Positions 17,957-46,500 of a stretch of 64,000 bases of DNA are shown one piece after another (position 1 is the stretch's first letter; every line of letters begins with the position of its first letter). The notes beneath the pieces are model-generated. The model searched no databases, had not been told where the DNA came from, and worked only from the letters and a program-made list of their open reading frames with translations. The stretch lies in the NCBI GenBank assembly GCA_965112735.1, contig OZ218963.1, positions 2,294,001-2,358,000 of the forward strand. Direction: 5' to 3'. Source of the DNA: Phaeosaccion multiseriatum. Its lineage: Eukaryota; Protista; Ochrophyta, other classes. The translations under genes and the position numbers were made by a program.

Positions 17957-20900
17957 TGTGCTATTGTCCTATACAGTGTTGGTCATACATTCAGGGGTCA
18001 CAGAAATATGAGTGTAACCTTCATGGACACCCCTGACCCAGGGGGGATAGATAGAAAGCGTGTGGAGAGCACTCTTTTTCTTGCAAGCTCTAAGTGAGTA
18101 GTAAAGACTTAATACGGACACCGACGCCCCACCAGAGGCGCGGCGAATACTTGGTCCAAACCCCTTAAGCTTTTCTACGTCAGCTTAGCACAGAACTAGT
18201 TCTCGCATAAAGAGTTGCGAAAGAAGAATAACAGCAGTTGCAGGAGTTCTGAGGAGACGTCCAACGAGACTTCAGCAGCGACAGACATCAGTGCAGTCTT
18301 CTAGGGGAACCTAGGAGGATGGTTACGCCTTCAGAGCAGGATAAGTATGACACCAGCGATTGGAGAGGAGATTGGCCGATTCTTAAAGGGCAGAAGACTC
18401 CGATCAGAGTGAACACCTTTGTGTATGGCTATGAGAGGTGCGCAGAGAGAATGAGACTCGCTAGACAGCAAGCTCGCATTCCCGACATGGCTACTTTGTT
18501 GGACCCTGTTCTGAGAACGCAAGCCAGCGTTGAGTTAAAGGTACAGGTAACAGAGCTGAACACTGAGAACGTGAAGAAATGGCTCAAGGATTGGTTGAAG
18601 GAACATTCTGAGAGCGACGTGCAAGGAGAGACACTTGCATCTATTGCCGACGAGATCACGATAGAATGTGCGAATCGTGAGAACGCCGGAGCGCTGAAGG
18701 AGGCTTTAATATATGCCCACACGGAGTTTTTGGGTATGATCAAGAACAGCTCCTTCAGCACCCTCTTGCAGACAGAGGATGGCACTGCAGACAATTGGTG
18801 GCTGCCCAAAGATAAGGCGGCTACGAAGTCCATCAGGTTTGCTTTCAACAGTGTCTTGGTCCGATTTGATTCCAATATGGTGAAGCTCATTAAAGATGCC
18901 GAGAGACAGTGGCAGAGCTCGATTGATTGGGACAAGAACTACAAGCAATGGTTTGAACTCGTAGTGGATATCCACATGGGGTGGGCTAATGCTCGAGCTG
19001 CTGCCGCGCGAGCGAATCTCACGGCGGAACAGGCCTTGCCCAACTTGAAGAAGACGGGAGGAGGCGGCTCTGCTAATTCTGGAAAGGGGGGAGAGCCCGC
19101 CTGGAAGAAGAAGAAGCAGTAGCAGGCGGCGGCCAAGAATGGTGCAGCTGCAAGTGGTGGTTCGGTTGACGCGAAACCCAAGGAGGATGTTAAGCCTGCC
19201 GGAGGAGGGGGGACTAAGGAGCCACGCCCTTTCTCTGGAAAGTGTCTTTCATGTGGGTTAGCCCACACCCTCAGGAAGTGCCCAACGACCTCCCAAGATC
19301 AGAAAGATCGACTGTGGGCGGACTATAAGAAGAAACACCCGCACATTAAGGTCCTGGCATCAGCAGAGGCAGATGCAGGAGCCGTAGCAGAGGATGTGGA
19401 AGGGGAGAGAGTCACAGTTGATCTCGTCGCCAACCCATCTGAGACGGTGTCGGAAGCCGCACGGCTGAAGATTTCCGCAGTTTGGGACTCGGGCTGTGAT
19501 GTGGGGCTGGTTATCTCCCGCCGAGATGCAGACAAGTTTGTTGCGCTCGGGCGAGGTGGCAAGCTCACAGTCATTAAACCCCGGAGCCTCAAGACTGGAA
19601 ATGGCCTGGTCGAAGCCAAGCAGGTTTTGACAGGAGCGCATTTGTTGTTTGACTTTCCATGGGGGCCAGTGAGTACCCTTCAGATGGAAGAGAGTCTGCG
19701 CAATGCGTACGTGTTGGAGGAGATCGACATGATGTGTCTAGGTCGTCCTCTTCAGAAGGCTTTTGGACTATCATCCATTCGAGCCCAGTTCGAGACGATG
19801 CATAGCGAAGAAGCTTTGCGTCGCGAACGCGAGACTGCGGAGAAGGAGAAGGAGGCAGAGCCTCATAGCTCCAGCGCAGGTAGAGTGATGAGTCTCTTTT
19901 CGTCGGCTCCCTCAGAGGAGAGTGACGATTTGTTTCCTGTTGAGCAGGGGACGGGCAAGACGCCCATAGTAGGATCGGTAGGAACCTACCACCTTAACAA
20001 TGAAGAGATCAAACAGTATGACGGTGTAGCTGATACCATTCAGCAACCTGAGGACGGACTGCCGCCCACATACGAGAGCCTTGAGGCACGTTTGGGGTCA
20101 GTCGTCGACAATGCTATAGCAGAGCATGATTTTCCCGAGCGGTTGAAAGAACCGATGCTGAGGGCACTACTGAAGTGGCCTGACGTGTGGCGGGATGAGT
20201 TACTGTGGGAGGACGGTGCTGCTAAGGTTGAGCCGATGAAGGTGCAGTTCAAGAGCTCTGAACCACATTCGCAGCTCCCTATCAAGCAACCCGGTCCGAA
20301 GGCGGCCTTTGTGCGCGAGTTCACCAATAAAATGGTAGACAAGGGCTTTGGCTACAGCAACCCGCAGAGCGTGTATTCTAACCGAGCCTTCGCAGTGGGA
20401 AAGCCGGGAAAGCCCGGTAAGTACAGACTGGTGTGTGACCTTCGGGCAGCTAACGCAAACACAGTCAAGGTTGATTTCGGTATGACTGACACGGAGACTA
20501 TCTCTCTCGCACTGCGAGGGGCCAGATGGTTTATTGAGATTGATGGCAAGGATTTCTTTTGGCAATTTCCGCTCGAGGAGTGGTGCCAGGAGCATTTCAC
20601 TTACATAACCTCAGACGCAAAGGTGACTCCTACGAGAGTACCACAGGGAGCCCTCAACTCAGCGGCATATGTGCAGGGTACCATGAGCGAGGTCTTTCGC
20701 GAAGAAGTCGGTAAGACTCACGCCGTGTACATTGACAATATCGCCTACTGGGCTATCGAGGGTGAGGAGCTGGTCGAGAGGACCGAACTCACCATGGACA
20801 AGCTTCACGAGAAGAACTTGAAGATGGGAGTCAGCTCATTCAGTTTCGGAAGTGAGTTGAAGTTCGTGGGCAGAGTGCATGACAGACATGGTACTCGTCA

Positions 20901-24258: not shown

Positions 24259-26276
24259 AGGGTGTCGATGATGTGGTGGTGGCTCAGTGGTTGGAGCAAC
24301 TCTTGTCCATGTGGAGCAGTCACTCGTTGCTGAAGCAGGCCGGTGTGGAGACGGAGCTGAACGCAGCACTGCAGTTGTTTCTCACCATTCGGCGGCTACT
24401 GTGGCAGTGTCGTGCCCTGCGGGCGGAGGTGGGAGGGTTGGCAGGTGGTGAATGTGTGCAGCAGCAGAGGCGGCGGGCGCAAGCAGCAGTGGCACGGGCC
24501 AAATTCTACCAGGCGCAGCTGCCCCAGCACATGCACGCAATGACTATCGGTGATGAAGGTTGGACAGAAGCGCAGCGGTGGGGCTTGGTGGTGGTGTTGA
24601 AGCAGCGAGTAGCGGCCTTCTGCGTGGATGGGAGCGATTACGGCCGCACAGATTCGGGCCGGTTTGGGTTTCCGTTGCTGGACCCGAAGCAGCCGCCAAT
24701 TCGGAGTGCGGCACGGCGCTACCCTCCTCCGGTCCGGCGCGGTATTGAGATTGAGTTGAACAAGATGTTAGCAGCAGAGATCATCCGGCCCAGCACAGCA
24801 GCCTGGGCCACTCCACTCATGGCCGTGTTGAAGACGGACGAGCACGGCAACACCAAGTGCCACGAGGACGGCACTCCGATCGTGCGGATGACGTGTGACC
24901 TGTCGCAGCTCAATGACGCGTGCCGCACGGAGGCGCCCGCCATGCCAGTGGTGGATGATTTGCTGGCGGAAATGCAGGGGTCTACGGTCTTTTCGGTGAT
25001 GGACATCATGTCTGGCTACTTCAATGTGCCCATGGCCACCACGGAGGATGAGGACATCTCTACATTTGTCTGCCACAGTGGCACGTACGCCTGGAGAGTC
25101 ATGCCACAAGGAGCGAAGAATGCACCCGCCACGTTCGTACGCCTTATGAACACGGTGTTGCAGGGCCTACAGGCATTCGTGGCGTGCTTCGTGGACGACA
25201 TTGCAGTTTTCTCCGCCACGGTGGATCCAGCACATTGGCCAGTTAGACCAAGTTCTCGGCAGGATGGTGCAGCACAAGCTCAAGCTGGCGCCGAGCAAGG
25301 TGGTGTTGGGGGCATCTCAGGTGCGCTTCTGTGGGCATTTGGTGGATAGTGAGGGGGTGCGGGCCGATCCAGCCAAGTATGCAGCAGTTCGAGCGCTGGC
25401 CAAGCCCACTGCGCAGTCAGGCAATCAGGTGCGACAGGTCAGGCGCTTTGTAGGCATGCTCAGCTACTTCCGCAAATTCATTCCGGCGTTTGCCATGAAG
25501 GTGCGGCCGCTCAATGAGCTCTTGCGCAAAGGGGTGGATGTGCGGTCAGCGTGGGGGCCGAGGCACGACGCGGCGTGGGAGGGGCTCATCGAGGACCTGC
25601 TCCGCTCGCCCGCGTTGGCCTTCCCTCACTATGGCTCGGAATCGGTGTTCACGCTCAGCACCGACGCTTCAGCAGACGGGTTAGGGGGTGTGCTGTCGCA
25701 GCGGGATGCCGAGGGGGTGGAGCGAGTCGTGACGTTCATCAGTCGTGCCACTACCCCCACGGAGGCTCGGCTAGGCAGTACGGAGCTCGAGCTCTTGGCG
25801 GTGGTTTGGTGTGTGCGCAAGTTGAGCATGTACATTTGCCACCATCCCTGCACGGTGGTGACGGACCACCAACCATTGCTGTGGCTGGCGACGCACAAGG
25901 ACACCAACTCCAAGCTCTTTCGGTGGTATGAACGGCTCTCTGCTCATCATCTCAAGTTTGTCCACAAACCGGGGCGGGAGCTTGTGGTGCCTGACTGCTT
26001 GTCACGCGACCCCTTGCCTGTGACTGAGTGGTGTGATGCGGTGGGAGTGGAGGTGGCGTTGGTGGATGTGGTGGGTGACACCCTCGCGTTAGGGTGGGAG
26101 GATCCGGTGGAAGGTGCGGTGCTGCGGTTTGCTGCCGCGGCGCAGCAGTTGCAAGGGGAGGCGGTGGCGGCTCAGTCAGTGCCTATGGAGGGACTCTCGT
26201 CGGTCACGGCGAGACAGCAGGCGTCGGCAGGTTTGGAGGCGCTGTGCGTGGACAGTGTGGCGGTCGAGGCGCCAGG
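24259..26276 (+). pseudogene. Element B reverse transcriptase and RNase H
   Basis: MDIMSGYFNV, MPQGAKNAP, FVDD, TDASADGLG, TDHQPL; +1 frameshift near 25228 relative to the paralog at 52840. Confidence 0.92.
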
Positions 26277-29200
26277 TGTTGCGATGTCTCTCTGCGCAAG
26301 TAGATACGTAAGCTCTTGTGCGTGTCAACTAATGTATTGTTCTTAACAGAACGCCATAAAAGTAGTACAGGGCCAAAGCCCCATGAGCCGAAGATCCCAG
26401 TGACGCATGTAACCAATATTGGGCATCCCACAGACCCCAATAAAGATCATATCACAACACCCTCCTTGGATCGAGACTCACTCTTTCCTAAACAGACACT
26501 CCTAAGATAGCAAGTAAAACGCATGTAAAACCTCGCTACCCTATTACCTAATCGCTAATCACTAACCCAAGCTATCCCAAGACTAACCCAAGCTAAAATA
26601 AAACCCAAACTACTTCAGCATCTTCGAAACCAAGTACTTGTGTACCTGTGGAGTCAAAGCCTTGGTCATGATGTCCCCAAGCTGCTCCTTCGTGTTCCCA
26701 TACTGAAACCTTACGTGCCCGTGCTGCACGTGATACTGCAGAAAATGATACCGAATGTCAGTGTGACGCGTGCGCTTGGAGCTCGCATTGCCATTGGCCA
26801 GCTGGATGCACCCCTGATTGTCCTTTGTACATCATCGTCTCCTCCAAAACCGTCTTCGGAAAGAGAAACTCCAAAAGACCTCGATGAAAGAGCACCTCCT
26901 TCGTGCACTCCGCTGCTGCCATATACTCACTCTCCATGGAGCACATTGCAATGACCTTGAACATCACTGCCTTGTGTGCAATTGGCCCGCCGCCAAGCAT
27001 GAGTACGAACCCCCCAGAGCTACGACGCTTGTCCACGTCCCCAGCCCAATTTGCGTCAGCGTAAGCCTCCAAAGCAAGACCCGCCTTTCGATCAAATTCA
27101 ATCCCCAAATCAAATGTACCCCTAATATACCCTGTCAAATGCATCAATGCCTTCCAGTGCTCCGGTCCCGGTCGCTGCATAAAACGAGCAAGCTCTCGCA
27201 CAGCATAAGACGTGTCTGGTCGCACAAAGTTGGCTGCCCACATCAAAGAACACACAAGACACGAGTACAACTTGTCAGACATAAACTCAATGTCTTCCAA
27301 ACCGTTGGCCTCCATTGTCTTAGACAAATGCACTCCCGGCTCCACTGGAGAGCCGTAAATTGGCCCCTCCAACTCGCCAGGTCGCTCCAAAGAACGACGC
27401 AGATACCCTCCAACCGAAAGCCGAAGAATACCCTGCTCCCGCTGATAATTCACCTCCAAACCCAGAAAGTGATCAGCCCGAGGACTGCGCTTCAAAGCAA
27501 ATTGCCCGTCTATCGCCGCGTAGGTACGGTCGATCAAATCTCCCGCTCCAGCCCCACACAGGTCATCCGCGTAAACAACTAACATGCCACACAAAATCTC
27601 CTCCTCCGTGTAGTAAGCAAACAAACACGGATCAATGTCACTCTGCACCCAGCCCATGCGTAACAGAAACTCTACCAGAGTCTGATTCCAACGCCTCGGT
27701 GACTGATGCAAACCATACAAGCTCCTCAAGAGCCTCAGCACAAGCCCACGCCCAAGCAAGTTATTTGGCGCAGAAACATACACTTCCTCCCCCTCCTCCA
27801 GAGGAGCGAACAGAAATGCAGTCTCTACATCAGCAATTTGCAAATCCCAATCATTGTGGCAAGCAATCGCAAAGAAAAGTTTCAATGTCGACCCACCCAC
27901 AACCGGAGCAAACGTATCCCAAAAGTCTTTGCCCCGCACCTGATGATGACCCCCCACCACCAGCCTCATCTTGAATTTATCCACAGTCCCATCAGGTTTT
28001 ACCTTGAGCTTGGATATCCAATGAGTAGGCAAGACGTGCATTCAGTCGGTCCGCGGGACTACCTCCCAGACCTTGCCCCTCCAAGCTGTTCCACTCACTG
28101 TGGAGAGCCTCGTTCCACTCCTCGGCGAACTCGCCGTTGAGCGCCTCGTTGATGCTCTTGTGCTCAAACCCGCCCGGCTTCTTCATAAGCCGAGTCAATT
28201 TCTCCTCGCAAATGCTATGTCGCTCACAATCATGCTAGCGGCCATCACCGACGAACCCACCCGGCTATCACACAGTCAGCCTGTTCGTCTTCAATGCCAC
28301 TTGCCTCTAAGCTCTTCCACAAATGCTCACAAGTCTTCGCTGGTGACCCATACACATGTCCACCCAAGACTTCATGCCACTCGAACGTAGCACCCATATC
28401 ATACCCCCTCTACAGGAACACTCAAAATCCAGTCCCCCTCTTCTGTGCACAACTTGCTCACCCTTGGTCCTGCTTCCGCGTTGACCTCTCCCATACAAAT
28501 CTTGCTCGCACGTAACCCTCATGCCACGCTGACCGCTCCCATACTTCCCTGTAGGTAGCGCACGCCAGTCCGTCTCCTGGGCGCCTCTGTCGCCCTCCCT
28601 GGCTGTCTCATACATCCAAAAACGACTGGCCTGCATAGGATCCAGGTTCTGCTCTGCCTTGCTCTGCTCTGCCTTGCTCTGCTCTGTCTCCTCTGCTCTG
28701 CTTTGCTCCGCTCTGGCTGCTCTTCCTGGTGCTGTTCTTGTTGTACTGTACGCTGCCTTCTCTTGTGTCTCTGCTGGCTCTGCCTGCTGCCGCTCGCGCT
28801 GTGCGGCTGGCTCTGCCTGTCTGCTGTCTTTGCCCCTCTCGGGAGTGGGTCCGTCCCTGCACGACGCTGCATATACTCTCCCGCCCGGCAGCGGGGTGTC
28901 CAATGCTGCCTGCTGTGTCACGGTAGACTTTCTCGTCGGTGCCACTGCCTCTTCCGGCTCTGCACGCTCTGGTTGCTGCTTTGCCTCTTCCGGCTCTGCA
29001 CACTCTGGTTGCTGCTCTGCCTCTTCCGGCTCTGCACACTCTGGTTGCTGCTCTGCCTCTTCCGGCTCTGCACGCTCTGGTTGCTGCTCTGCCTCTTCCG
29101 GCTCTGCACGCAACCCTCTCTCTTCATTAGTAAGGGGCCCTCCCTCACCATTAGGACTGATCTTACGTGTATCGACCGACACTTCCGTTTCACCATCCGT

Positions 29201-30161
29201 CCCTTCTTCTTCCGGCTCCGGCATACCATTTTCTCGTATGCCCAGCCCAAGACTACTAACGTAGCCTTCGATGTGGGACGCACCCTCATCACCGGGACAG
29301 GTCTCACGTGTGTCAGAAGACACATCCGTTCCACCATCCGCCCCCACTGTTTGGACATAAGAATTGTCCTGTGCCGCATCTTCTGCCGTGGGCACTCTCT
29401 CGTCATCCGACAGAATGTCTAAGGCGCCTTGCATGCCAATAAAGGCGCGCAGATCGGCCTTGTACTGCCAGAACTCTACTAACGTAGAGCCCTCTTTCAG
29501 CTCAGAAGAAAAGGTTTGCACTTTTGACTTGTAGCTCAAACAAATCAGAGAACCGCTGCTACCGCTGCTGCCCCCATCCACGCTGTTTCCCCTTTCCTCT
29601 ACCGTGCCGCCAATACCTGACGCACTTTCTTGGCTTTCGGCTGCTAACGCAACAGAACCGCCTGCTTCGGAACTTGTGCCCAACTGGGCTTCCATCATCT
29701 GCATAAGCCTTGCAATCTGCTGCTCCTGCTTCTGCACTGTGCGAAGCAATACCTGAGAATCTAACGATTCGCTGCTTGCTCCTTGACTAGAGGTTACATC
29801 AACCTCTTCGTCATCGTCCCCTTTCTGCTCTGTCGTGCTAGCATGTCCCCCAGACATGGGTACCGCAAGACAGGACTACGCCTTCTTCTGTTGAATTACA
29901 CTCACTTCGTTTTCTGCTGTCGCCGAACAAATAAATTGCAGAACCAGCTAGCTGTGAAGATGTTCGCGACAATTGTCGTGTTGCGATGTCTCTCTGCGCA
30001 AGTAGATACGTAAGCTCTTGTGCGTGTCAACTAATGTATTGTTCTTAACAGAACGCCATAAAAGTAGTACAGGGCCAAAGCCCCATGAGCCGAAGATCCC
30101 AGTGACGCATGTAACCAATATTGGGCATCCCACAGACCCCAATAAAGATCATATCACAACA
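26277..30161 (-). mobile_element. Element D: Ty1/copia deletion derivative retaining RT-RNase H but lacking PR and IN
   Basis: 183-bp LTRs 26277-26459 and 29979-30161, TSD CCAGG, PPT at 26460-26467; RT LYGLHQSPR, YADD; RH YADANWA; gag N-terminus in ORF 28307-29857. Confidence 0.92.
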
Positions 30162-30166
30162 CCAGG

Positions 30167-31283
30167 CGGCTTCGGGTCGGCTCGGCTGCAGCACGTGGAG
30201 CAGATGCGGCAATGTGGCTGGGCTCCAGTGACCCTGTCCCACATCAACGAGAAGAAACGGGTGATAGAGGAGTGGTCTCAGCTGCCGCTGTTTCTCAGCC
30301 ACGTGCCAGCAGCGCGGTGCACGTACATACGCACGGAGGAGCAGGTGTGGGACATGCGAGCGGCACTGCGGGAGGCGACAGTGGTGGCCATGGACTCGGA
30401 GTGGGCTATACGCACTCCTCCTCGGCCGGCGTCTCTGCTGCAATTGGGTGTTCAGTATAGCGGCGTCGCCAATTCGGAGCGTGATTGTGGGTTCTGGGTG
30501 GATTTGGACAGTTTGAGTGGCAATGGTGGTATGGAGGCGCTGGCGGCGGTGCTGAGTGAGCTGTGGGGCGACGGGGGGATTATGAAGCTGGCGCATCACT
30601 GGAGTCACGACCAGCGTGCCCTAGGGAAGTGGCCGGCGTTGGCGCCGCATGTGTGGACCATCGCCAACTTGGTCGACACGACGCATTTATTCAAGGAGGT
30701 GTGGCCTGAGCACTGCCGTCCCATTGGCTTAGCAGACCTGGTTAGTATGTTCCTGCAGCGTTTTATGAGCAAGGAGGAGCAGAAGACGGATTGGACTCAG
30801 CGGGAGCTCACTGCGGCCCAGCTCAGCTATGCCTTCGACGATGTGGCCGCATTACTACAGTTGTTGCCGAAGATGCGGGCTTGTGCAGTTCCGGTGCCGT
30901 CTGCGATGGAAGTGAGCGCGGTGGATAGCGGGGGGGCGGGTGTGACGCGTGCTGAGATGCGCGCAGGACAGTTCGTCTCTGCCGGGGTGGGGTATTGGGC
31001 CGATCGGGAGCACGCCAGTCCGCTCTTCATTTTCTCAGCGACCGCTAAGTCAGTGGAGATGATCGACCTGATCCTTCTTTCTTACCGACATCCCCAGTGG
31101 ACCTGGACGGAGCTCATGGACGCAGTGGAGCAGTTCAGGGCGCGCTATCGGCCGGCCGCGGCGCGGAGGCGTGGCAAGCTGTCACTACCTCGAGCGGTTA
31201 TGATTGAGAAGACGTGGAGTGCCATCGCCGCAGATACGGGCGGCTTCTACACCATGGTGACCCCCACAGAGGCCCAGCAGTAG
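30167..31283 (+). CDS. DEDDy 3'-5' exonuclease domain (RNase D/WRN/Mut-7-like) within element B pol
   Basis: ExoI VAMDSEW, LLQLG, ExoII HHWSHD, GLADLV, ExoIII TDWTQRELTAAQLSYAFDD; in frame with RNase H across the element D TSD. Confidence 0.85.
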
Positions 31284-32221: not shown

Positions 32222-33684
32222 TGTGGAGTCGTGCACTGAAAGGATGACTACCAATAGCAATAGACCCTACCTGCACATAGCAGGAGGTCAGTCGCTATCC
32301 ACCAGAGGTGGAACACTCGTGAGAAAACGAAAGGACGAGAGATGAAGTAATATTTTAGGAGATGGAAAGAACTAAAAGGAAACTGAAACTGAACGAAGAA
32401 ACTGAAACTATGAACTGACGACATTTGTGAGCATACCTCCACAGTCCCCCCTTTGAAAGCATGTGTGCATACGCAGACATGATAAGGAAAGAGAAAGAGA
32501 TGAACACAAATAGGAGGAAAGGAAGTAAGGAAAAGAGGGAAATCCACACAGACTGGCTACACCGACTTGGGAACAGAACAGATGGAGGGAAAAGCTGCCT
32601 CACACAAGGGGGAGGGAAAAAGCGGCCACACAAACAGTCCAGAAACACCAGAGAGTAGAGAGAATTAGCCCTAGCTACACCGACTTGGGAACAGAACAGA
32701 TGGAGGGAAAAGCTGCCTCACACAAGGGGGAGGGAAAAAGCGGCCTCACAAACAGTCTAGAAACACCAGAGGGTAGGGAGAATTATTTCAGGGCACATTG
32801 GTACTCAGAAGGTATAGGAAAGAGTCCGAGGGAAACAGAAGAAGATTAGAAGTGAGGAGAGTAACGGTCACGGAGAAAGGTGACAGTACGTTCCGACGCC
32901 TGACGGGGAGGGCCGGTGGCGCCGTCTTTGATGTGCTGCGTCGCTGCTGCCTTACCAAGGGCCTCTTGGATATTAATGCCGAGCTCCTTCAGGGTGGCGC
33001 GGCCCACGGTAACCAACTTGGTCATGTCGTTATCCGTGATGGCATAGCTGATCTTGGGCACCAAGAGAGGGCCCTGGAAGGTGTGAAGAATGAGGTCCAA
33101 AGGTGGAGTACGCCGCTTGTAGGAAAACATGTTGGGGCTTGAGGCCGGCAGCGAGGCCTCCGCTGATTGCAGAAGCTGTGCCTTCTACCCATTCGTCCGC
33201 ACTCTCGTTGTAGACCACGGCGAGCTGCCCACATTTATCCAGCGCCGAAAAGAGCTGCACAATCTGCTGCTGGCATCGATCCACTGCGGCCGCTCTCTGA
33301 CTGGGATCGGCCAAAAAAGGCTGGATGTAGACCTCGATGCTGGAAGAGCCTACCGCGGGTGGTGTACAGCCTACCACCGGGTGTTGTAGTGGCGAGACGG
33401 ACATTGGTCGCCGCTGAAATTGGAAAGTGTATGAAATGTACTATCCGGTAATAACTAGTTATTGTGGAGTCGTGCACTGAAAGGATGACTACCAATAGCA
33501 ATAGACCCTACCTGCACATAGCAGGAGGTCAGTCGCTATCCACCAGAGGTGGAACACTCGTGAGAAAACGAAAGGACGAGAGATGAAGTAATATTTTAGG
33601 AGATGGAAAGAACTAAAAGGAAACTGAAACTGAACGAAGAAACTGAATCTATGAACTGACGACATTTGTGAGCATACCTCCACA
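32222..33684 (-). mobile_element. Element G1: 1463-bp non-autonomous LTR element (gypsy deletion derivative)
   Basis: 222-bp LTRs 32222-32443 and 33463-33684, TSD GTGC, PPT at 32444-32455, protease-tail-like remnant TVGRATLKELGINI. Confidence 0.92.
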
Positions 33685-33969
33685 GTGCTGACGTGGCAGG
33701 ACCTTTCCCCATGGCCATGGGGGGGGAGGAGTACATTTTGGTGTTTCAAGATTGGTTCACCAAATGGACAGTGGTGGTACCATTGTGCGCCAAGGACTAT
33801 ACAGCGGAGGGCATTGCTCGGGCATTCGTGCGGCACGTAGTGACGGTGCTGGGGGCGCCCAAGGTGCTGGTCAGTGACCAAGGGTCGCAGTTCACGAGCA
33901 CGCTCATGGCCGATGTGCTGCGCGTACTCCAGACATCACAAGTCTTCACTACGCCGATGCATCAGCAAG

Positions 33970-34694: not shown

Positions 34695-35458
34695 CAAGCC
34701 AATGGGCAAGTGGAGCGCTTCATGGCCACGATGAAGGACATGCTGGCGACGACAGTGGAGGCCCAGATGCAGCAGTGGCCTGAGTATGTGTAAAGAGTCA
34801 CGTTGCTCTCCACCTAGGATAGGAGTAGCCGCATGGATAAGGTAATAGCAACCCCAAAGCCAGCCTGGCAGCCAGCCTTGTCTCTATTAGCTTTATCCGT
34901 GAGCCATCCTAAACGACCAACCTGCTGGGAGGTGAGTGAGAAACGGGCCACGCACCGTTTCTCACCGTATTTGCCTGGGCCTGGGCCATTGACATAATAC
35001 TGACTTTCAACATCCCCGTCAGCCATCCCTGCACTTCTAACATCCCCCTGCACTAAACTATTGCGTGTCCCCACGCAACTCAAAGCGGGTTCGCCTACTA
35101 AGCTAAGCTCGACTTGTAGCAAAAGCCTCCATGTTGCTTCCAATAAAAACGGATGAGAAATATGCAAAACTCACCCAGGTGTGTGCGACCGCTCCTCCAA
35201 CACACACCCTCCTGTATTGGTGAGAAAACCCCACGACTCAAACTCACCCACACAGGCTCACGGATGAGAACATGTTGGGATATCTCCCTCCTGGAGACTG
35301 GTGTCGTACTTGCACGAGTGTGGGAAAGCGTCTTATTAGCTACATAACACTAAAAGAAGAAGTGAACGGACTTGTACCAGCGATATGAGATCGATATCTA
35401 GTGTCGACATCGATTTATCTCAACACACCTCCTCGCCTGGTACTGTCCATTCCGCTAA

Positions 35459-37096
35459 CTACGCCCTAAAACCCATCATCTTTTCACGTAAAGCTACAAG
35501 TACTGCCGGGGTCACATGCTTCGTCAAAAGGTCAGCCAGCTGCGCCTTCGAAGCCACGTACTCAAATGCAATAAGAGCCTCCTTCACTGCGTCTTGCAGA
35601 AAATGAAACCGAACATCAATGTGCTTCATCCTCCGTGTCGATGCATTGCTCTCTGCCAGCTTGATACACCCCATGTTGTCCTCAAAAACAACTGTCGCCT
35701 TCGACGAGTCATCAGGGAACAAGAAACTCAATACCTGCCTAATGTATAATATTTCCTTCACACAGTCACTGGCTGCCATGTACTCGCTCTCCAGCGAAGA
35801 CATCGCCACACTCAGCTGCAATCGCACACCCCAAGTGATAGCTGCACCTCCGTACATCAAAGCATAACCAATCGAACTCCTGCGAGTGTCAACACATGCA
35901 GCGTAATTCGCGTCTGCATATGCTTCCAAAACACACTCGCCCTTGCCAAACACCAAAGCACGATCCACAGTACCCTTCAGGTAGCCAAACACACGCATAG
36001 CCTGCTTCCAATGCTCAGGGCCGGGGTTCTTCATATACCGCGACAACTCTCGAACAGCATAGGCAATATCAGGCCTTGTCCAGTTTGAGATCCACATCAA
36101 AACGCCCACCACACCGGGGTAGTCCTTGTCAGTCATAAAAGCTACATCAGCTGCAGACGATGGCTCCATACTCTTGCTGAGTGCTGTGCCAGACACACCG
36201 GGTGTCGAGTAAACTCGATCAGACTCCAAACCAAACTTCACTATCATCTTCTTGATGTAGTGCTCCAATGTCAATGTGACAGTGCCTACGCTCCGGTTGA
36301 ACACAACGCGCACTCCCAAAAACTGATCAACATTGGGCCCAAGTCTCTTCAACGAAAACTTGTTGTCCAGCTCTGTAAAGAGCCAGTCCACCACCTCCTG
36401 CTTTCCTCCGCAGGACAAATCATCAACAAATACAATGAGGATGCCAACAAGCTCCCCATTCTTCCACAAAACAAATAAACACGGCTCAGCGCCGCACTGT
36501 TGCCATCCAAGCTCAAGCAGAAACTTCACCAATGTCTGATACCAACGTCTCGGTGCCTGATGTAGACCATAGAGTGCCATCAGCAAGCGCATGACCTTGC
36601 CCTTCCGCAGAAAACCCGGAGGCGGTAACACATACACCACCTCATGCTCTTGCAGAGGCGCATGCAGAAAAGCTTGATCCACATCAGCAAACTCACACAC
36701 AAAACCAGACGTCTTCATCTTGTCAACCACCACAGCGAAGAACAAACGAACCACGGGCGCCGCAATCACTGGAGCAAAGCAATCAGAGAAATCAATTCCC
36801 TCCGTCTGAGTATGACCGCCAACCACCAAACGAGCCTTCAACTTGGTAACATTGTCGAGATGATCACTCTTCACCTTATAAACAAAGTGAGAGCGTACTG
36901 GTCGCACATCCAAAGGCTGATCCACCACTTCCCAAGAATTTCTTGCTTCAAGCCCCCCCCACTCACTCAGCATAGCCGCTGCCCACTCATCAGAAAACTT
37001 TCCAGTCAGAGCCTCATGCCGATTCTTTGGGGTAGGTACCTCAGACACCTTCGTACCTGGAGCTAACGACAGTAGCGCGTGCAAAGCCGCTGAATG
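35459..37096 (-). CDS. Element E reverse transcriptase-RNase H, in frame behind a TGA
   Basis: KARLVVGG, LYGLHQAPR, FVDD, YADANYA, EDNMGCI, KHIDVRFHF. Confidence 0.93.
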   Translation of the reverse strand, partial: HSAALHALLSLAPGTKVSEVPTPKNRHEALTGKFSDEWAAAMLSEWGGLEARNSWEVVDQPLDVRPVRSHFVYKVKSDHLDNVTKLKARLVVGGHTQTEGIDFSDCFAPVIAAPVVRLFFAVVVDKMKTSGFVCEFADVDQAFLHAPLQEHEVVYVLPPPGFLRKGKVMRLLMALYGLHQAPRRWYQTLVKFLLELGWQQCGAEPCLFVLWKNGELVGILIVFVDDLSCGGKQEVVDWLFTELDNKFSLKRLGPNVDQFLGVRVVFNRSVGTVTLTLEHYIKKMIVKFGLESDRVYSTPGVSGTALSKSMEPSSAADVAFMTDKDYPGVVGVLMWISNWTRPDIAYAVRELSRYMKNPGPEHWKQAMRVFGYLKGTVDRALVFGKGECVLEAYADANYAACVDTRRSSIGYALMYGGAAITWGVRLQLSVAMSSLESEYMAASDCVKEILYIRQVLSFLFPDDSSKATVVFEDNMGCIKLAESNASTRRMKHIDVRFHFLQDAVKEALIAFEYVASKAQLADLLTKHVTPAVLVALREKMMGFRA

Positions 37097-40000
37097 TCAG
37101 GTGTCACTCTTCTGCTGTGGTTTGGTCGAGCGTCGCGAGTGTCCACGACCGTACCCGCCAGATGACAAACTCTCCCAAAACACCTCCTTGTGGCCATGTT
37201 CCTGATCAGTCCAATCCCAACCAGGACGAGGCGCTGCGCTTTTCTCCTGCTGCTGGTGCTGAACGGATCCTTTGTCTTTGAGCTGCTGCTGTTGCTCTTT
37301 CTTCTGCTGCTGCTGCGTCACCTCCAAAGAGCTGCGCTGATGTCCTTGCTGCTGCTGAGTCTGCAACACACGCTGCTGTGCGTCTGGAAGACGCTCTCCA
37401 GTTTGCTCATGATCCCCCTCGTCCAAATCCAGCGCAGAAAAATCGAACAGATCGAATTTTGACACCGCGATTTCCGAATCCTCGATTTCCGTAACGTCTT
37501 TCTCCAAAGGGAACTCCGACGACGGCGCGGGCTCTTTCAGAGCAAAATTGGTCTCGCTGAAAAGCTGTCCATCGATCCCACGACGCTCAGGGAGTAGCCG
37601 AAAACTGCGACTGAGGATAACGCGCTCCGTCTTCGGATCGAAAAAGACCAGGCAGTCAATCGGATGATACTTGCTCCTCCCAAGGTAGATCACAGCTCTG
37701 CCACGCCCAGACTCGTAGTGCTTGATCGTGTGGGTGGGGCGCTGCTCCTTGATATAGGCCAGACAGCCGTACGGAGCGATGTTGCTGCAGTCCGGAGCAT
37801 GACCAGTGAGCACCTCATACCGTGACGGTTCGCCCCGCTTGCCGTTCAAGTTCAAAAACATAGAGGCATATCGAGCCCCAAAACACCACAGTTTCGGAAA
37901 CGCCTGATCCAAACCCGCCGCGTCAGAGACCACTGCTGCCTTCTGAGCCAGTGTGGCCAGTCTCTTCTCTATAGCTCCATTCTGCTCCGGGGTATAGGGA
38001 GAGGTGAACTTCCAATGAACGCCCTTGCTGGTCACAAAGGTAGCTGCCTGCTCCTGATTCAGCAGCTCGTTGCCGTTGTCAACTAGCAACTCCTCAAGCT
38101 GTGCACCAGTAGGCACTACCACCTCCGCCCAAAAACGCTGCAAGGCAAGGATGAAATGGCTCTTTTTCGTGGTAAAGTACACCCAGCCAACCTTGGAGGC
38201 CATATCCTGGAAGCCAAACACCCACTTGTACCCCCCATATGCCTCAAAACTCACCGGTTGGGCATCTGCTGCCACTACACGTAGCCCATCCGTTGGATCG
38301 ACAGGTCGAAGGGCCCGAGACACGTTGGCTCGGCGAGCATTGTTCCGCAGGCACGGCTCACACGAGCGCAGAGTCCCAGTGAGGTGAATGCCACGCTGCT
38401 TCGCTGTAAAGCGCAAATCTTGCTCAGCCTGGTGCCCGTTGGTGATATGGAACTGGTTGATGTCCTCCTTCGGTAACGCACGATGCCGCACACAGCCCAA
38501 CACATTGACCTGCATGAGCTCATCCTGACTGGCAATCACAGCAAGAGGGTCGTCTGGAGAGGACCCAAAGACCAGCTGATCGTTCTCATCATCTCCGTGT
38601 ACACCTCCCAAAGCCTGCTGCAAGTCGCTGAGCCGCAGCAAGTTGAACTTGGCCTGAGGGGCCACAACCACATCAATGCGCACCAGCCGCCGACCGCCGT
38701 TGCGGTCCTTCATCTCGAGCAGCAGCTCCCCGCGGGCAGTGACAGTGACATACCCTTCACCCGCAGTAGCTCGCATCTCGTTGATCCGCTCGATGTTTTG
38801 CACAGCCGTCATGTCGCTCGTAAGGTTACACGACGCTCCACTATCCACCACCCAGGTCTCTGAAGAGCCACTCGTCGGCGGTTCGGTGACGGACAGACAA
38901 ACACCGAGGAGAGAGCCCCAATTTACCTTGGTTGCTCGAGGCTCGCCCGAAGCAGGGGTGGTCATGACGGGTGCTGCAGAAGCGTTCTTGAGGCACCCCT
39001 TCAGAGTGGAGGGACCTCCACCTTTGCCGTCGCTGGCACTCGCAGGCTGCTCCTTCTGCTCCTTCGGCGGCGGATCCTTCTTCGGCTGCTCTGTGTTCTT
39101 GGGCTTCTTCTTCTCCGCAAACTTGGGGCACTGCTCGTCCGTAGAGATGTGGTCAGAGGAGTTACACGCAAAGCAGCGACGCCCATTGGGACACTTGAAG
39201 TGGGCGTGGTCTGTCAGGCCGCATTTAAAGCAGCGGTTGTGACGTCGACCGCCGCGAGGCCGGTCACCGCCCCCGTCCTTGCCACCATTGCCTCCCCTGG
39301 GGAAGGCAAGAATAGGGAGACTCGAAGAGCCACCCGCACCACCTTGCCGAATAGCCTCAGCTGCCGCTTCCTCTGTGGTCCAGAGGTCAGCCTTAAAGTC
39401 CGTGGGGTCCGTGATCCCTATTGCCACACGTCGCCAGGTCTCCTTGAAGTGGAAGAGCACGGAAGGGAGACGCTCCAAAAAATTGACGGTGACGGCGCCG
39501 ATGGTCATGACAATGCCGTACTCCTGAAGGAGCAGGCGGTACTCCAGCATCTCCTTGTAAAGCTGGGTAGGGGGGCGCTTATCCGAGATCCGCAGCTCCA
39601 AATACTCCTTCTGAAGACGATTCGCAGTCGAAGCTTCCCCTTTTCCTACCAGACGGTCCCGGGCATGGTTGAAAATGTCCTGCAGCGTCCCTCCATTGCG
39701 GGCAACGTCCTGCAGGGCCTGTTGAACATGCTTGCTGCCAAACGACTTAATGACCTTCTGCACCACCTGAGAGAAAAGGTAGCGCACGTTACTCAGGTTG
39801 TCATCAAGTTCCGCCAGGGCGGAGGGCGGCACCAACTCAGGCTCCTCCAGCATGAACCGAAGGCCCAAACTATCGAGCTCGGTGTGCCAACCTTCTTCGT
39901 GCTTCCGAAAGGCCAAAGCGGTGGGAGCCTCTCCTCGCAGCTCAAACTTAATTGCAGCCAAGGCCGTCTGACGCAGCTGGGCCCACTTGCCATGGGTATT

Positions 40001-40735
40001 GGCGTGCATCGTCGTGAGGTCAACCAACAACGGGTCAGGAACCTCCTCACTCTCGGATGAGTCGTCATCACTGCTGTCTGATGTGCCAGCTGCGGCAGCC
40101 GCTGCAGCCGCAGAGGATGCCCTCACTCTCCCTCGAGTAGCTGTCCCGCCAGCAATCTGCACAGTCTCTTCTTCAGTATCAAGTGCTGCGTGGAGGCCTG
40201 CACCATCGGTGGCCAAGTCTGGGGACAGGGCCACGGCCTCCTCCTCTTGTTCCTCTGCAGCGTCCAGGAAGCGCTCGTCGGCATCCCTCCTTTTGGGTGC
40301 CAACGCTGCTTGCACTGCTGCAATGGACGCTTCGTCCATCTCATTCAACTGTGACAACACTGACTTCACCGTGGGTCTACTGGCCACTGCAGCAGACCTA
40401 AGTCCAGACATGGCAGGCGTAAAAGCCCTGCCACCGCTCCCGCTACGAGCAGAGGTATCCACTGCTGCTGCCCGACTGGGGGAGTTTGTTACGGGCCCCA
40501 CCTGGGCACTACGCAACCCTCGTGTATGGAGTTCCTTGTAGTCAAGGCCAGGCCGCATCCGCAAGCCATAGCCGCTGCCGGACAAAGCTGAATCAACTCG
40601 AAGCTCCTCCTGCTGCCTTCTACTCAAAACCCCCTCCTGTCTCGTGCTCTCTTGGTCGCGGAGCCACCGCTCCTTGATCGCACGACGTGCCTTCTCCCTC
40701 GAAGCTCTAGACACTCGTCGGTCCGCCATACTCAA
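37097..40735 (-). CDS. Element E gag-protease-integrase polyprotein
   Basis: Zinc knuckles CFKCGLTDHAHFKC and CFACNSSDH, WVVDSGAS, H-H-C-C, DNGNE, YTPEQNGAIEK. Confidence 0.93.
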   Translation of the reverse strand: MSMADRRVSRASREKARRAIKERWLRDQESTRQEGVLSRRQQEELRVDSALSGSGYGLRMRPGLDYKELHTRGLRSAQVGPVTNSPSRAAAVDTSARSGSGGRAFTPAMSGLRSAAVASRPTVKSVLSQLNEMDEASIAAVQAALAPKRRDADERFLDAAEEQEEEAVALSPDLATDGAGLHAALDTEEETVQIAGGTATRGRVRASSAAAAAAAAGTSDSSDDDSSESEEVPDPLLVDLTTMHANTHGKWAQLRQTALAAIKFELRGEAPTALAFRKHEEGWHTELDSLGLRFMLEEPELVPPSALAELDDNLSNVRYLFSQVVQKVIKSFGSKHVQQALQDVARNGGTLQDIFNHARDRLVGKGEASTANRLQKEYLELRISDKRPPTQLYKEMLEYRLLLQEYGIVMTIGAVTVNFLERLPSVLFHFKETWRRVAIGITDPTDFKADLWTTEEAAAEAIRQGGAGGSSSLPILAFPRGGNGGKDGGGDRPRGGRRHNRCFKCGLTDHAHFKCPNGRRCFACNSSDHISTDEQCPKFAEKKKPKNTEQPKKDPPPKEQKEQPASASDGKGGGPSTLKGCLKNASAAPVMTTPASGEPRATKVNWGSLLGVCLSVTEPPTSGSSETWVVDSGASCNLTSDMTAVQNIERINEMRATAGEGYVTVTARGELLLEMKDRNGGRRLVRIDVVVAPQAKFNLLRLSDLQQALGGVHGDDENDQLVFGSSPDDPLAVIASQDELMQVNVLGCVRHRALPKEDINQFHITNGHQAEQDLRFTAKQRGIHLTGTLRSCEPCLRNNARRANVSRALRPVDPTDGLRVVAADAQPVSFEAYGGYKWVFGFQDMASKVGWVYFTTKKSHFILALQRFWAEVVVPTGAQLEELLVDNGNELLNQEQAATFVTSKGVHWKFTSPYTPEQNGAIEKRLATLAQKAAVVSDAAGLDQAFPKLWCFGARYASMFLNLNGKRGEPSRYEVLTGHAPDCSNIAPYGCLAYIKEQRPTHTIKHYESGRGRAVIYLGRSKYHPIDCLVFFDPKTERVILSRSFRLLPERRGIDGQLFSETNFALKEPAPSSEFPLEKDVTEIEDSEIAVSKFDLFDFSALDLDEGDHEQTGERLPDAQQRVLQTQQQQGHQRSSLEVTQQQQKKEQQQQLKDKGSVQHQQQEKSAAPRPGWDWTDQEHGHKEVFWESLSSGGYGRGHSRRSTKPQQKSDT

Positions 40736-41193
40736 TGCAGCGTGGCAGACGCACCAGTGCTAAGATCTACTCCGACCGTTTCAGCTCTCCGAACTCATCC
40801 CGTACTTTACGTTCACCTCTGCACTAATGCGCATTAGATTTCAACCGACAATTGTCGTGTTGGGATATCTCCCTCCTGGAGACTGGTGTCGTACTTGCAC
40901 GAGTGTGGGAAAGCGTCTTATTAGCTACATAACACTAAAAGAAGAAGTGAACGGACTTGTACCAGCGATATGAGATCGATATCTAGTGTCGACATCGATT
41001 TATCTCAACAGAACATCCCATGACTCAAACTCACCCGCGCAATTCTCTATCTCCACTCCTACTCGCCACCAGCGTTGCCAAAGCCGCGTTGCGCACCACT
41101 AATGCTGACTGCTCAAGTGTTTACTGGTGTGCCTACAAGGCACCCAGACAGTCCCTAAAGCAGCCTTGCGAGTATCCTTCTCTGTCTCCCGCC

Positions 41194-41840
41194 AAGCTCC
41201 GTGCAACAGCAACAGCCGCGCTGCTGCCACACTCGAAAGCCGTGCCCGCTGTAGGGCACCGCTCTCGGCAATTCTCTATCTCCACGGCCCACCAAGCTCC
41301 AGCAGCAATTTCCGTGCAACAGCAACATCCGTGCTGCTGCCACACTCGAAAGCCATGCCCGCTGTCTAAGGCACCACTCCCGGCAATTCTCTGTCTCCAC
41401 GGCCCACCAAGCTCCAGCAGCAATTTCCGTGCAACAGCAACATCCGTGCTGCTGCCACACTCGAAAGCCGTGCCCGCTGTAAGGCACCGCTCCCGGCAAT
41501 TCTCTATCTCCACGGCCCACCAAGCTCCAGCAGCAATTTCCGTGTAACAGCAACATCCGTGCTGCTGCCACACTCGAAAGCCATGCCCGCTGTAAGGCAC
41601 CGCTCCCGGCAATTCTCCATCTCCACTGCCCACCAAGCTCCAGCAGCAATTTCCGTGTAACAGCAACATCCGTGCTGCTGCCATACTCGAAAGCCATGCC
41701 CGCTGTAAGGCACCGCTCCCGGCAATTCTCCATCTCCACTGCCCACCAAGCTCCAGCAGCAATTTCCGTGCAACAGCAACATGTGTGCTGCTGCCACACT
41801 CGAAAGCCATGCCCGCTGTCTAAGGCACCACTCCCGGCAA
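41194..41840. repeat. Tandem array of about 5.7 units of 113-115 bp inside element H
   Basis: G(C/T)AACAGCAAC recurs at 41203, 41316, 41431, 41544, 41657, 41770. Confidence 0.9.
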
Positions 41841-42247
41841 ACTCAAAGCTACCGAGCTGCTGCCTGAGCCTCTTGGCCAAGGTCAGCTGCCTTCGGGATT
41901 CTTTGGGGTTGTAAAGAGTCACGTTGCTCTCCACCTAGGATAGGAGTAGCCGCATGGATAAGGTAATAGCAACCCCAAAGCCAGCCTGGCAGCCAGCCTT
42001 GTCTCTATTAGCTTTATCCGTGAGCCATCCTAAACGACCAACCTGCTGGGAGGTGAGTGAGAAACGGGCCACGCACCGTTTCTCACCGTATTTGCCTGGG
42101 CCTGGGCCATTGACATAATACTGACTTTCAACATATGTTCCCGCGCTCACGTACGCGTACAACTGCAGAGCTCACAAGACCACAGGCCTCTCCCCGTACT
42201 ACACTCTCTTCGGTCGACACCCCCCGATTCCACTTCAAGCGATGCTG

Positions 42248-43594: not shown

Positions 43595-46500
43595 TGTTGT
43601 GATAAGTATCGCCATTTGTGACTGAGCACTATATCGACGTACAATATCGATGTGGATATCGATGTTCATGTATGGCCACGGCCATCACTTCCTTGAACGC
43701 ATCTCTCAGTAGGTATTATTAATACACGAGTTGACACTACTCTAGCTTGTCCCTGTCATCGTAGAGGAGATATCGCAACACGACAGCTGTCGCGACACTT
43801 CACAGCTAGCTGGTTCTACGTAGTCGGCGACGGCACACAGGCGAGTTTTGGTCGGATAACTCAAGTGAGAGAGAAGGAGTCCTTTCGTTAGCCATGCCAG
43901 GCGCGGAAGAAGAAGGCGTTGAAAAGGCGGACGCAGCGGCGCCCGTCAGTGCGAGTTCCGCGATAGAAGGAGACGCACAGCAGCAGATGGCTGAAATGAT
44001 GGAAAAGATGATAGCGGCAGCGTTGGCCAAACACATCACACAGCAAGGAGTGCCCACGGCAGCGGCCGCAGCACCAGTCACTATCTCCTCAGTCGGAGGA
44101 ACAGTGACCCCCAGCGGGGGGGGGAGTACAGCACAGCAGCTGCTAGAACTCACGTTCAAGCCGAAGAACAATGAGTTTGACAAGAAGTTGGAATCGGAGG
44201 GAGTGATGCCTCTCTTGCGATTTATGCGAGCGGTCACGGATCACATAGGGGGGATGGGGGCAAAGGCATTCTTGGTGGATAGTGATAAGATCCCCAACGC
44301 AGACGACGCCTCCCGGGACTCTAAGTATGCCCTGACGTTCAGTCTGTACCAACAGACGGGCCTCAAGATTTTGGAGGCCATTCCCTCGGACATGAGGGAT
44401 GCCATAGAAGAACGCACTCGCACAGCGCGGTTCCAAGTGGACCTGGTACTATTGATGCAGGCAATCAAGGAGGCAGTGATGGGGAGCACGCAGTCACAGC
44501 GACAAGAGTTTCTCACCTCCGAGATGCACGATCTGAGGCCAGGGGTGGGGGAGACGGGACTTGCCTACCTCAACAAGTTTCTCCAACTCAACGTGTTGAT
44601 GACGGAGGAGCAGCTTCCTATGTCCTACTCCATCATCAAGGACAAGTTCCTCAGGCGTATGGGGCAGAGATGGGAGTCGTTCGGCCAAGTGCACGGTCAT
44701 TCGGTAGAGACAGAGGACGAGTTTAATCGGTTCAAACAGCAAGTGCAGCGGTTTGACAGTGACCTCCAAGCGCAAGCGAGGGAGGCGGGAGAGGACCTTG
44801 AGCGGGGCCTTTTCCACATTTACCAGCAAAGGCAGAAGACACAGCAACCAGCAGGGGGGTAGACAGACCACCACAGGGGCAGGAGAGAAAGATCGGTCCA
44901 ACACACGCTGTTACAGGTGTGGGAGAAAGGGGCACATGCGGACGACGTGTCCGTCCAAGGAGGAGCTGTGTTTCAACTGCCACAAGCCGGGGCACCAGCG
45001 TGCAGACTGCCCAAACAGCAGGAAGAAGAAAGATGGCGAGCATGTGGAAGGCTCCACCAGCGCCATTTTCAGCATTCCGTGGACGCTACAGGAGAGGGGG
45101 AGCGGCCATTCTCTCTACCATATGTCCAAGCTGAAGTCGGGGGCGGATGGCACACGGCAGGGGCTCGCAGACAGCGGATCGGCGCTCAATGTGTGGCCCA
45201 ACTTGGATGGACTGTACGATTTCTGCGCTCATCAGAGTTTAGTGCAACTCGCAGACGGCAAGTCGCACGCGCAGATAATGGGCAAAGGGAAGGTGAACAT
45301 CAGCTACGTCTCCAACGACGGCAAAAGAGGACTGAAGGGGCTGGAGGTAGTGGTGTCGCCAGACGTACCTTTCTGCATTTTTGCAGAGAAGAACCTCTCA
45401 GACCTACTGGGGGGAGCGCAAGGCCAGCGGGGAAGCCAGTCTATTTCGGCCCCTCAGCAGACGCACCAGAGACGGTGCACACGACGCAGGACCCAGAGCT
45501 GGGGCTTGACATGCTACAATTCAAGATCGAGGAGGCCACGGAGCAGTGGAGTGATTACATGACTTACCACTGCAAGAAGGGCCACCGCAACGATCAAGAA
45601 CTACGGCGACAGGCCAAGCTGGAGGGCGTGACACTGTGCGGGAAGAGGGCGCCGTGCAAGACTTGCGCAGAGGTGAAGATGACGAAGGCAGCTCAGAGTA
45701 AGCAGTTCATCGACTACCCCAAGGCACCGCTGGCACAGGTAACGCTCGACACCATTCCTCTCGAAGGAGAGCACGTGTTGCAGGCGTGCTGCCCGCACAC
45801 GGGTATGGGCTGGTGCAGGAAGGTGGGGGGAAAGACGGAGGCGCACTTCCAGAGCGTGTATGACGACCTCAACACCACAGTATTCATTCCAGGGGAGAGG
45901 ACAGCGGGGTACAAGGTGCAGTGTCTGTCAGCAGACAACGGATCGGAGCTCATCAAGACGAAGGCAGCGAAGAAGATGCTCTACTCCCAGGGCATTGAGG
46001 TCAAGCTGACGGACCCCAATTGTCAAGCGCAGAACGGACTGAACGAGGCTCGACACAAGGAGCTGGCGCGAATGTCTATTCTTTTCATTGAGGAGGCGAA
46101 GCTGGAGGAGCACTCGAAGCAGCTGAGGTTCGTAGCGTACAAGTTGGCGCAGCTTCTCTACAACACCAGGTGCAGGAGGGGGCAGCAGCAGTCCCCCTAC
46201 GAGCTGTATTTCAAGCGCAAGCCTGACCTACAGCACCTACACATCTTCGGAGAGCAGGCGAAGGTGCGGGTGGGCAACAAGAAGCACAAGCAGTGGCACA
46301 ACGACAAGACGCACTCGGCAGTGTACGTGGGACAGAGCCCCAACCACAGATCAGCCTGTCTCCTTTTCTACATCCCTTCACAGAAGCGGTTCATCTCCAG
46401 CTCGTCCTACACATTCGTGACGAACCGCAGACACGACGGCACGGTGTTCGGGAGTCACGTGGAGAAGGGGAAGCTACCAGAGACAGCGGAGAAGGAGGAT

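Follow-up and report, generated by a model that had tools for sequence, protein, structure and literature searches.

A palindrome at the primer-binding position of copia retrotransposons in Phaeosaccion multiseriatum

The Ty1/copia elements C, D and E of Phaeosaccion multiseriatum have a 12-nt palindrome directly behind the 5' LTR, with no base in between, at the position of the primer-binding site (PBS). From the sequences, this palindrome is likely the start site of minus-strand synthesis, because it is the sole position for copying U5 and R, it is the only conserved element of the leader, and the elements are active. How LTR elements prime without a tRNA or a Tf1-type site is a question raised by the GalEa report of 2017.

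Results

Copia elements in the window

The window analyzed here is a stretch of 64,000 nt (contig OZ218963.1, positions 2,294,001–2,358,000) from the 67-Mb assembly GCA_965112735.1. Element E is a complete copia element on the minus strand (35273..41010), with two 153 bp LTRs (35273–35425 and 40858–41010) of 100% identity and the TSD TGTTC. Its 5' LTR (40858..41010, minus strand) reads TGTTGAGAT...GATATCCCAACA. The ORFs for Gag-PR-IN (37097–40735) and RT-RNase H (35459–37084), both on the minus strand, have one in-frame TGA between them, and a polypurine tract (GGCGAGGAGGTG; 35426..35437, minus strand) is found immediately upstream of the 3' LTR. Recoding or read-through signals are not usually located where this TGA stop lies, between Gag-PR-IN and RT-RNase H (37085–37096, minus strand).

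Element D (26277..30163, minus strand) is a short copia element of 3.9 kb, with 185 bp LTRs (26277–26461 and 29979–30163) of 100% identity, the TSD CCTGG and an RVT_2 ORF at 26758–28041. Element C1 (14840..24170, minus strand) also has 100% identical LTRs (14840–15025 and 23985–24170) and the TSD CCTGG, and carries the gypsy element F nested within it. From a further copia element on the plus strand, C2, the 5' LTR is at 43595..43780. The LTRs of C, D and E read TGTTG..CAACA, and the TSDs have 5 bp (TGTTC, CCTGG). The TSD CCTGG is common to C1 (14835–14839 and 24171–24175) and D (26272–26276 and 30164–30168). This is probably a coincidence and not a target preference, other copies being flanked differently.

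The membership in Ty1/copia was given by the Pfam domain RVT_2, with E-values of 2.6e-48 for E and 1.4e-33 for D, by the integrase-associated domains Pol_BBD and SH3_retrovirus upstream of the RT, and by the domain order PR-IN-RT-RNase H. The RTs of E and D are 45% identical. A search of the RT against 1.8 billion representative proteins gave no match above 40% identity, and an integrase search for relatives elsewhere gave only matches of 30% identity or less. With E and D at 45% and nothing outside above 40%, C, D and E probably form one old and isolated clade with an inherited site.

Contigs from four public runs of one sample, the only ones in which E was found and none of them an RNA run, showed E present, and also a joint that leaves out exactly 5743 nt, the length of the element plus one TSD copy. 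This joint marks the empty site of E. The joint fixes the limits of the E insertion. Since E is inserted in another repeat, the joint may stem from paralogous copies of this host repeat. The identical LTR pairs and the 5-bp TSDs of E, D and C1 indicate that the arrangement works and that the elements were recently active. The sequence-only reading, made before this analysis, had likewise taken E to be intact and the arrangement to work.

The LTR of E (40858–41010) and other LTRs from C and E were unusually rich in 6-bp palindromes, with repeated ATCGAT, GTCGAC and GATATC. The termini of the C and E LTRs form a 12-nt inverted repeat, TGTTGNGATATC...GATATCNCAACA.

Palindrome 1 at the 5' LTR border

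Palindrome 1 is CGACAATTGTCG in E (40846..40857, minus strand), where it begins at the first base after the LTR, and in D (29967..29978, minus strand), where it adjoins the 5' LTR at 29979–30163. In C1 (23973..23984, minus strand) and C2 (43781..43792, plus strand) it is CGACAGCTGTCG, again adjoining the 5' LTR. In all four copies the LTR ends in ...GAYATCNCAACA and CGACA.. follows at base +1 of the element strand, and the four positions are exactly those given by the sequence-only reading. The word CGACARYTGTCG had four matches in the window, versus 0.02 expected by chance.

We then counted both forms in the 67-Mb genome, where 43 of the 52 copies adjoined a copia LTR end. For CGACAATTGTCG there were 27 sites (reversed-word control, 1), with 26 at a copia LTR end; for CGACAGCTGTCG there were 25 sites (reversed-word control, 10), with 17 at an LTR end. 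The nine copies away from LTR ends were in unrelated repeats or in unique sequence. At least eleven subfamilies are represented among the LTR-adjacent copies. Their leaders diverge right from the base 3' of the palindrome, and the +1 position was constant in every one (C, C', D, D', D'', L082, E1, E2, L050, E' and L069).

Among 18 aligned representatives, 10 of the 12 positions in palindrome 1 were invariant, and the two central ones were either AT or GC. Beyond the palindrome, the leader flanks of the C/D and E groups were not alignable in the same 18 representatives. The central double change was noted before as keeping the palindrome perfect, and the alignment agrees. Judged from these sequences, the change from AT to GC is a single evolutionary event, separating the C group from the rest. 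The GC centre was found in 3 of the 18 representatives, all from the C group, so that covariation statistics are thin for this palindrome. A genome search for the LTR end followed by the palindrome with a free centre gave 41 exact sites, 24 with AT, 16 with GC and one with GT. A third centre variant, CGACACGTGTCG, had two sites, neither at an LTR end, and was taken as chance.

The palindrome was perfect in every element with an identical LTR pair. Five copies at an LTR were imperfect. Each of the four inspected was either truncated or in decay and lacked a 3' LTR over 6.7 kb, and the fifth is in the inverted LTR pair of L069 (G000:C12:538717-539728, ~430–560). At this locus two E-like LTR ends stand head to head, in the order LTR-CGACAATTGTCG, a leader of ~65 nt that is partly self-complementary, and CGACAATTGTAG-reverse LTR. 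It could be a by-product of snap-back reverse transcription, or two truncated insertions. A metagenome scan with the LTR end plus palindrome as query gave chance matches only, all without the LTR motif.

Palindrome 2 and the kind of pairing

A second palindrome follows in each leader, as claimed earlier for these elements, ~10 nt 3' of palindrome 1. It is CTAATGCGCATTAG in E (40824..40837, minus strand; 9 nt downstream of palindrome 1), and CAGCTAGCTG in D (29945..29954, minus strand), C1 (23953..23962, minus strand) and C2 (43803..43812, plus strand). In the E group its central pair is CG, AT or TA, with the self-complementarity kept. Between the E and E' subfamilies (CTAATGCGCATTAG versus CTAGTGATCACTAG), one stem pair changed between A-U and G-C. 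Overall, 96.5% of the cells paired and the observed covariation was reached by none of 500 shuffles, values that are inflated by relatedness and thus descriptive.

The duplexes of palindrome 1 had predicted energies of −17.0 and −21.7 kcal/mol, versus −2.9 kcal/mol for the 4-bp hairpin, and those of palindrome 2 ranged from −16.6 to −21.4 kcal/mol (ViennaRNA). The adjacent central bases stay complementary, and could not pair with each other within a hairpin, pointing toward a duplex of two strands. This point of logic outweighs the covariation statistics. The two strands may be two RNAs, or the strands of a DNA site read by a dimeric protein; the central symmetry fits both. Together, covariation and duplex energies lend indirect support to a pairing of dimers.

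Search for tRNA primers

Because the 12-mer is its own complement, any RNA pairing in trans with all 12 nt must itself contain the 12-mer. None of the 52 genomic copies was within a tRNA gene or another known RNA gene (ARAGORN, Rfam). A canonical PBS, starting with TGG and matching at least 8–18 nt of a tRNA 3' CCA end and lying within a few bases of the 5' LTR, was absent as well: in all subfamilies the LTR is followed by CGACA.., in agreement with the sequence-only reading. In the active E1 copy there was no TGG within the first 40 nt of the leader. A TGGTTCT in the C and D leaders was considered as a displaced tRNA PBS and rejected, since C and D share 6–7 nt only and it overlaps palindrome 2. 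No other candidate PBS was found in the leader.

For shorter pairings, we searched for TGTCG, the obligatory 3' end of the primer, up to 52 nt upstream or up to 16 nt downstream of a canonical B box. The counts near canonical tRNA B boxes were at or below those of the reversed-pattern controls. The sole real nuclear tRNA recovered by this search was a tRNA-Val(CAC) (locus L107, G000:C2:3848195-3851218), with the anticodon arm ...CACAUUGUCG. With the AATT form of the palindrome it has an anchored match of 7 nt, and with the AGCT form one of 5 nt and a G-U pair. This tRNA was rejected as a primer, since a match of 7 nt is roughly the chance expectation among some fifty tRNA species. Its anticodon stem, UGACA / UGUCG, resembles the half-sites CGACA / TGTCG of palindrome 1, a likeness that we judged to be chance. 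These 7 nt were also the best match in the search for internal tRNA-fragment priming, where a PBS match of at least 12 nt would be expected, in a nuclear tRNA set that is incomplete. The host RNA search that the sequence-only reading had called for thus returned no tRNA or Rfam gene with the 12-mer.

With the Rfam tRNA model, 63 of ~1052 candidates from the whole genome were scored, all on organellar contigs. A pattern of A box plus B box gave ~7 nuclear tRNA-like matches in the 67 Mb of contigs C1–C16. Either the nuclear tRNA genes are few or atypical, or the pattern was too strict. Contigs C17–C22 are organellar and have many repeated tRNA copies. A tRNA-Asp pattern retrieved only organellar genes and three non-tRNA sites; spacings of 13 nt were outside its gap range.

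Search for Tf1-type complements

In Tf1-type self-priming the element's own LTR is complementary to the PBS. When the LTRs of 11 representatives were compared with the first 90 nt of their leaders, perfect complements reached 0–7 nt at the longest, and shuffled LTRs did equally well. The 12-mer itself was absent from the LTRs in the window. With complements of 7 nt at most, at chance level, the defining feature of the Tf1 type is lacking in C, D and E, and the earlier claim that no LTR sequence matches the palindrome stands, there being no complement of 8 nt or more. Two LTR motifs containing CGACA, TGTCGACAC near the start of the E LTR and GTACGACACC near its end, were considered as Tf1-like partners. 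They were rejected, because their pairing is limited to 5 nt and their conservation does not extend to all subfamilies of C, D and E.

A different layout was found in X10, the non-autonomous LTR element that hosts E (34789–42134, minus strand; LTRs 34789–35013 and 41910–42134). Its leader opens with 9 nt (ACCCCAAAG) that could pair with LTR positions 154–162, a length of complement that 7 of 200 shuffles also reached. By its sequence X10 has a Tf1-like layout, and self-priming of the known type may also exist in this genome. X10 also has 113-nt tandem repeats, at 41139–41818.

Palindromic sites in gypsy F and in a miniature LTR element

Gypsy F (17957–23738), with RVT_1, RNase H and integrase domains and near-identical LTRs that one analysis gave as 100% identical, has a palindromic site at 18192..18203 on the plus strand, reading GAACTAGTTC after the LTR end ...GCACA. 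Together with the last A of the LTR the palindrome has 12 nt, AGAACTAGTTCT. A miniature LTR element of 1.46 kb (32222–33686; LTRs of 224 bp), with a near-identical second copy at 55218–56682, has ATAACTAGTTAT after the LTR end ...CCACA (33451..33462, minus strand), a palindrome of 14 nt when the last A of the LTR is counted.

The two words have the core AACTAGTT in common, and the flanking pair is changed with the symmetry kept. Genome-wide, 41 LTR-end sites with this core were found (control, 2), of which 31 had the gypsy F form, nine the miniature form, and one was imperfect. The core was not found inside the LTRs of gypsy F or of the miniature element. By sequence, these sites represent a second class of palindromic PBS, unrelated to the word of C, D and E. 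The miniature element may be mobilized by F-type proteins.

Discussion

Proposed priming mechanism

A self-complementary word has one pairing partner that would always be available, the second copy of the genomic RNA in the particle. We propose a tRNA-independent self-priming on an RNA dimer paired at the palindrome, with the partner cut to give the primer, and we hold the chances of this reading to be about even. Two co-packaged RNAs would pair antiparallel over the 12 nt, and palindrome 2 would stabilize them. A cut in one strand, at the duplex's 3' edge, would follow, of the kind that the RNase H of Tf1 makes in an RNA:RNA duplex. The 3'-OH so created would stand opposite the first base after U5, and its extension would copy U5-R from the partner RNA. 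Left uncut, this partner would retain the palindrome, allowing a later plus-strand transfer as in the standard model. The AT and GC centres would weaken cross-pairing between families, comparable to the HIV-1 DIS subtypes. A point against the model is that the primer would be a partner RNA with a long 5' tail (R-U5), and that a plus-strand strong-stop end at the palindrome is not explained by it.

Priming on a dimer was also suggested by the sequence-only reading. From this suggestion, the lack of a tRNA or Tf1-type complement was borne out and the pairing as a dimer gained indirect support; that the pairing is in RNA and in trans, and that an enzyme then cuts the partner and lets it prime, are steps that we infer. 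More tentatively, and with some doubt on our side, the copia and gypsy elements described here might both prime by paired co-packaged RNAs through a new mechanism, which would also explain the Conserved Hairpin Site of GalEa, with the palindrome center acting as a family-specific code for who primes whom.

Alternative explanations

The palindrome could also act in cis, folding into a hairpin that is cut at its 3' edge, so that the RNA's own 3' end is extended through U5-R. A palindrome adjoining U5 is just the geometry that such a snap-back requires, in E the symmetry even reaches into U5 (CAAC(A)CGACAATTGTCGGTTG), and a hairpin was proposed by the authors of the fungal GalEa study (PMC5445492). 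The hairpin, however, would have only 4 bp and a 4-nt loop, at about −3 kcal/mol, and it leaves the covariation of the two adjacent central bases unexplained. Moreover, a cut RNA loses the palindrome as template, and the second strand transfer would lack its complement unless another, uncut RNA were used. A purely cis snap-back is affected by this loss, whereas the version in trans is consistent, because its uncut template keeps the palindrome. We therefore find snap-back priming improbable. It is also unlikely that the palindromes are dimerization or packaging signals only, similar to a DIS, with a host RNA as primer on part of the site, e.g., a fragment of Val(CAC) with its end at position 43. 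The small RNA in question would end in ...AAUUGUCG or ...AGCUGUCG. The 7-nt match of tRNA-Val(CAC) is anchored at the LTR border in the AATT form, Drosophila copia does use an internal tRNA fragment, and our listing of nuclear tRNAs is incomplete. Yet a 7-nt match is expected by chance in a set of roughly 50 tRNA species, just 5 nt and one G-U are paired in the AGCT form, and the conservation spans all 12 nt and not 7. For the unrelated word of gypsy F and the miniature element, another host RNA would have to match by coincidence, and the leader offers no other candidate PBS.

A role in DNA, as a site for a dimeric protein (a transcription factor of the CANNTG type, a silencing factor or a protein of the element) with an incidental adjacency to the LTR, would fit the symmetry of the central dinucleotide as well as an RNA duplex does. 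Both centers are of the CANNTG type (CAATTG and CAGCTG), and 6-bp palindromes abound in the LTRs, as described above. We consider this role very unlikely nonetheless, because no base separates the palindrome from the LTR end in any subfamily, nor in an unrelated gypsy lineage with another word, and a regulatory site would tolerate shifts in position. The elements would also be left with no primer site, yet they transpose, as seen from their identical LTRs and TSDs.

Comparison with known systems

In HIV-1 (the DIS loop, GCGCGC or GUGCAC), MLV (PAL) and Ty1 (PAL), two genomic RNAs pair through palindromes of the 5' leader, and the differences between lineages leave the palindrome intact. There, the palindrome is in a hairpin loop beside a normal tRNA PBS, whereas here it takes the PBS position itself and there is no tRNA PBS. 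Drosophila copia and yeast Ty5 prime with an internal tRNA fragment, their PBS matching 13–15 nt of the initiator tRNA-Met. They resemble our elements in being of the copia type and in having a PBS that does not start with TGG, but the best tRNA match here has 7 nt, to Val(CAC).

In Tf1/sushi elements (Levin 1995, 1996), the initial 11 nt of the element's own transcript, located in the LTR, form a complement to the PBS, and the Tf1 RNase H cleaves the RNA:RNA duplex at the PBS to make the primer (PMC7175516). These elements likewise initiate without a tRNA and give an enzymatic precedent for the proposed cut. They differ in that the Tf1 PBS is not palindromic, and in C, D and E the complement between LTR and leader is 7 nt at most. 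If priming on a partner RNA is true, it would be a third basic priming mode of LTR retroelements, and it would tie genome dimerization directly to initiation. The recently moved copies with identical LTRs are suited to experiments.

The closest precedent is found in fungi. In GalEa copia elements a palindromic "Conserved Hairpin Site" replaces the PBS (Donnart 2017, BMC Genomics 18:410; PMC5445492). The word has 9 conserved nt, palindromic together with the final A of the LTR, (A)CTGATCAGT or (A)CTAATTAGT, and an inverse-complement copy with a fixed A/A mismatch, CHSeq2, follows 2–41 nt downstream (PMC5445492). Neither a tRNA nor a Tf1-type complement was found by the authors, who pointed out the likeness to dimer initiation sites and left the mechanism undecided (PMC5445492). 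In the literature searched, a single later paper refers to the site. The arrangement is thus not new in kind, and the novelty implied by the sequence-only reading was overstated, given that GalEa has been known since 2017 to carry a palindrome instead of the PBS, with the same kind of substitutions that keep its symmetry (PMC5445492).

GalEa and the algal elements are both copia, with short LTRs (TGT..CA), 5-bp TSDs, and neither a tRNA PBS nor a Tf1-type complement. In both, the PBS is replaced by a conserved palindrome at the border of the 5' LTR, and both have two main variants that keep the symmetry, (A)CTGATCAGT/(A)CTAATTAGT in fungi and CGACAATTGTCG/CGACAGCTGTCG in the alga. The algal copia palindrome, in contrast, has 12 nt and is complete without the last A of the LTR, which is included in the gypsy F and miniature versions. 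There is no counterpart of CHSeq2: the first 68–90 nt of the algal leader hold no copy or complement of palindrome 1, and a second, different palindrome follows instead. A CGACA half-site adjacent to palindrome 1 was found in the C group only. The protein motifs also differ, with KARLVV, DVDQAF, FVDD, TRPDI, ADLLTK and CX2CX4HX4C (CCHC) knuckles in element E, and KSRLVI, DITQAY, QTDD, CQPEA and a C2C4C4H gag knuckle in fungal GalEa. By these motifs, the algal elements have the general copia features and fall outside the GalEa clade. Their host is a stramenopile, and the palindromic site is found in a gypsy lineage too.

New here is the occurrence of a palindromic site in a deeply divergent copia clade, in a gypsy family and in a miniature LTR element, and the covariation of the central bases favors a duplex of two strands over the hairpin proposed for GalEa. 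The same arrangement in several independent lineages suggests that the palindromic site is a recurrent solution, and not a fungal oddity.
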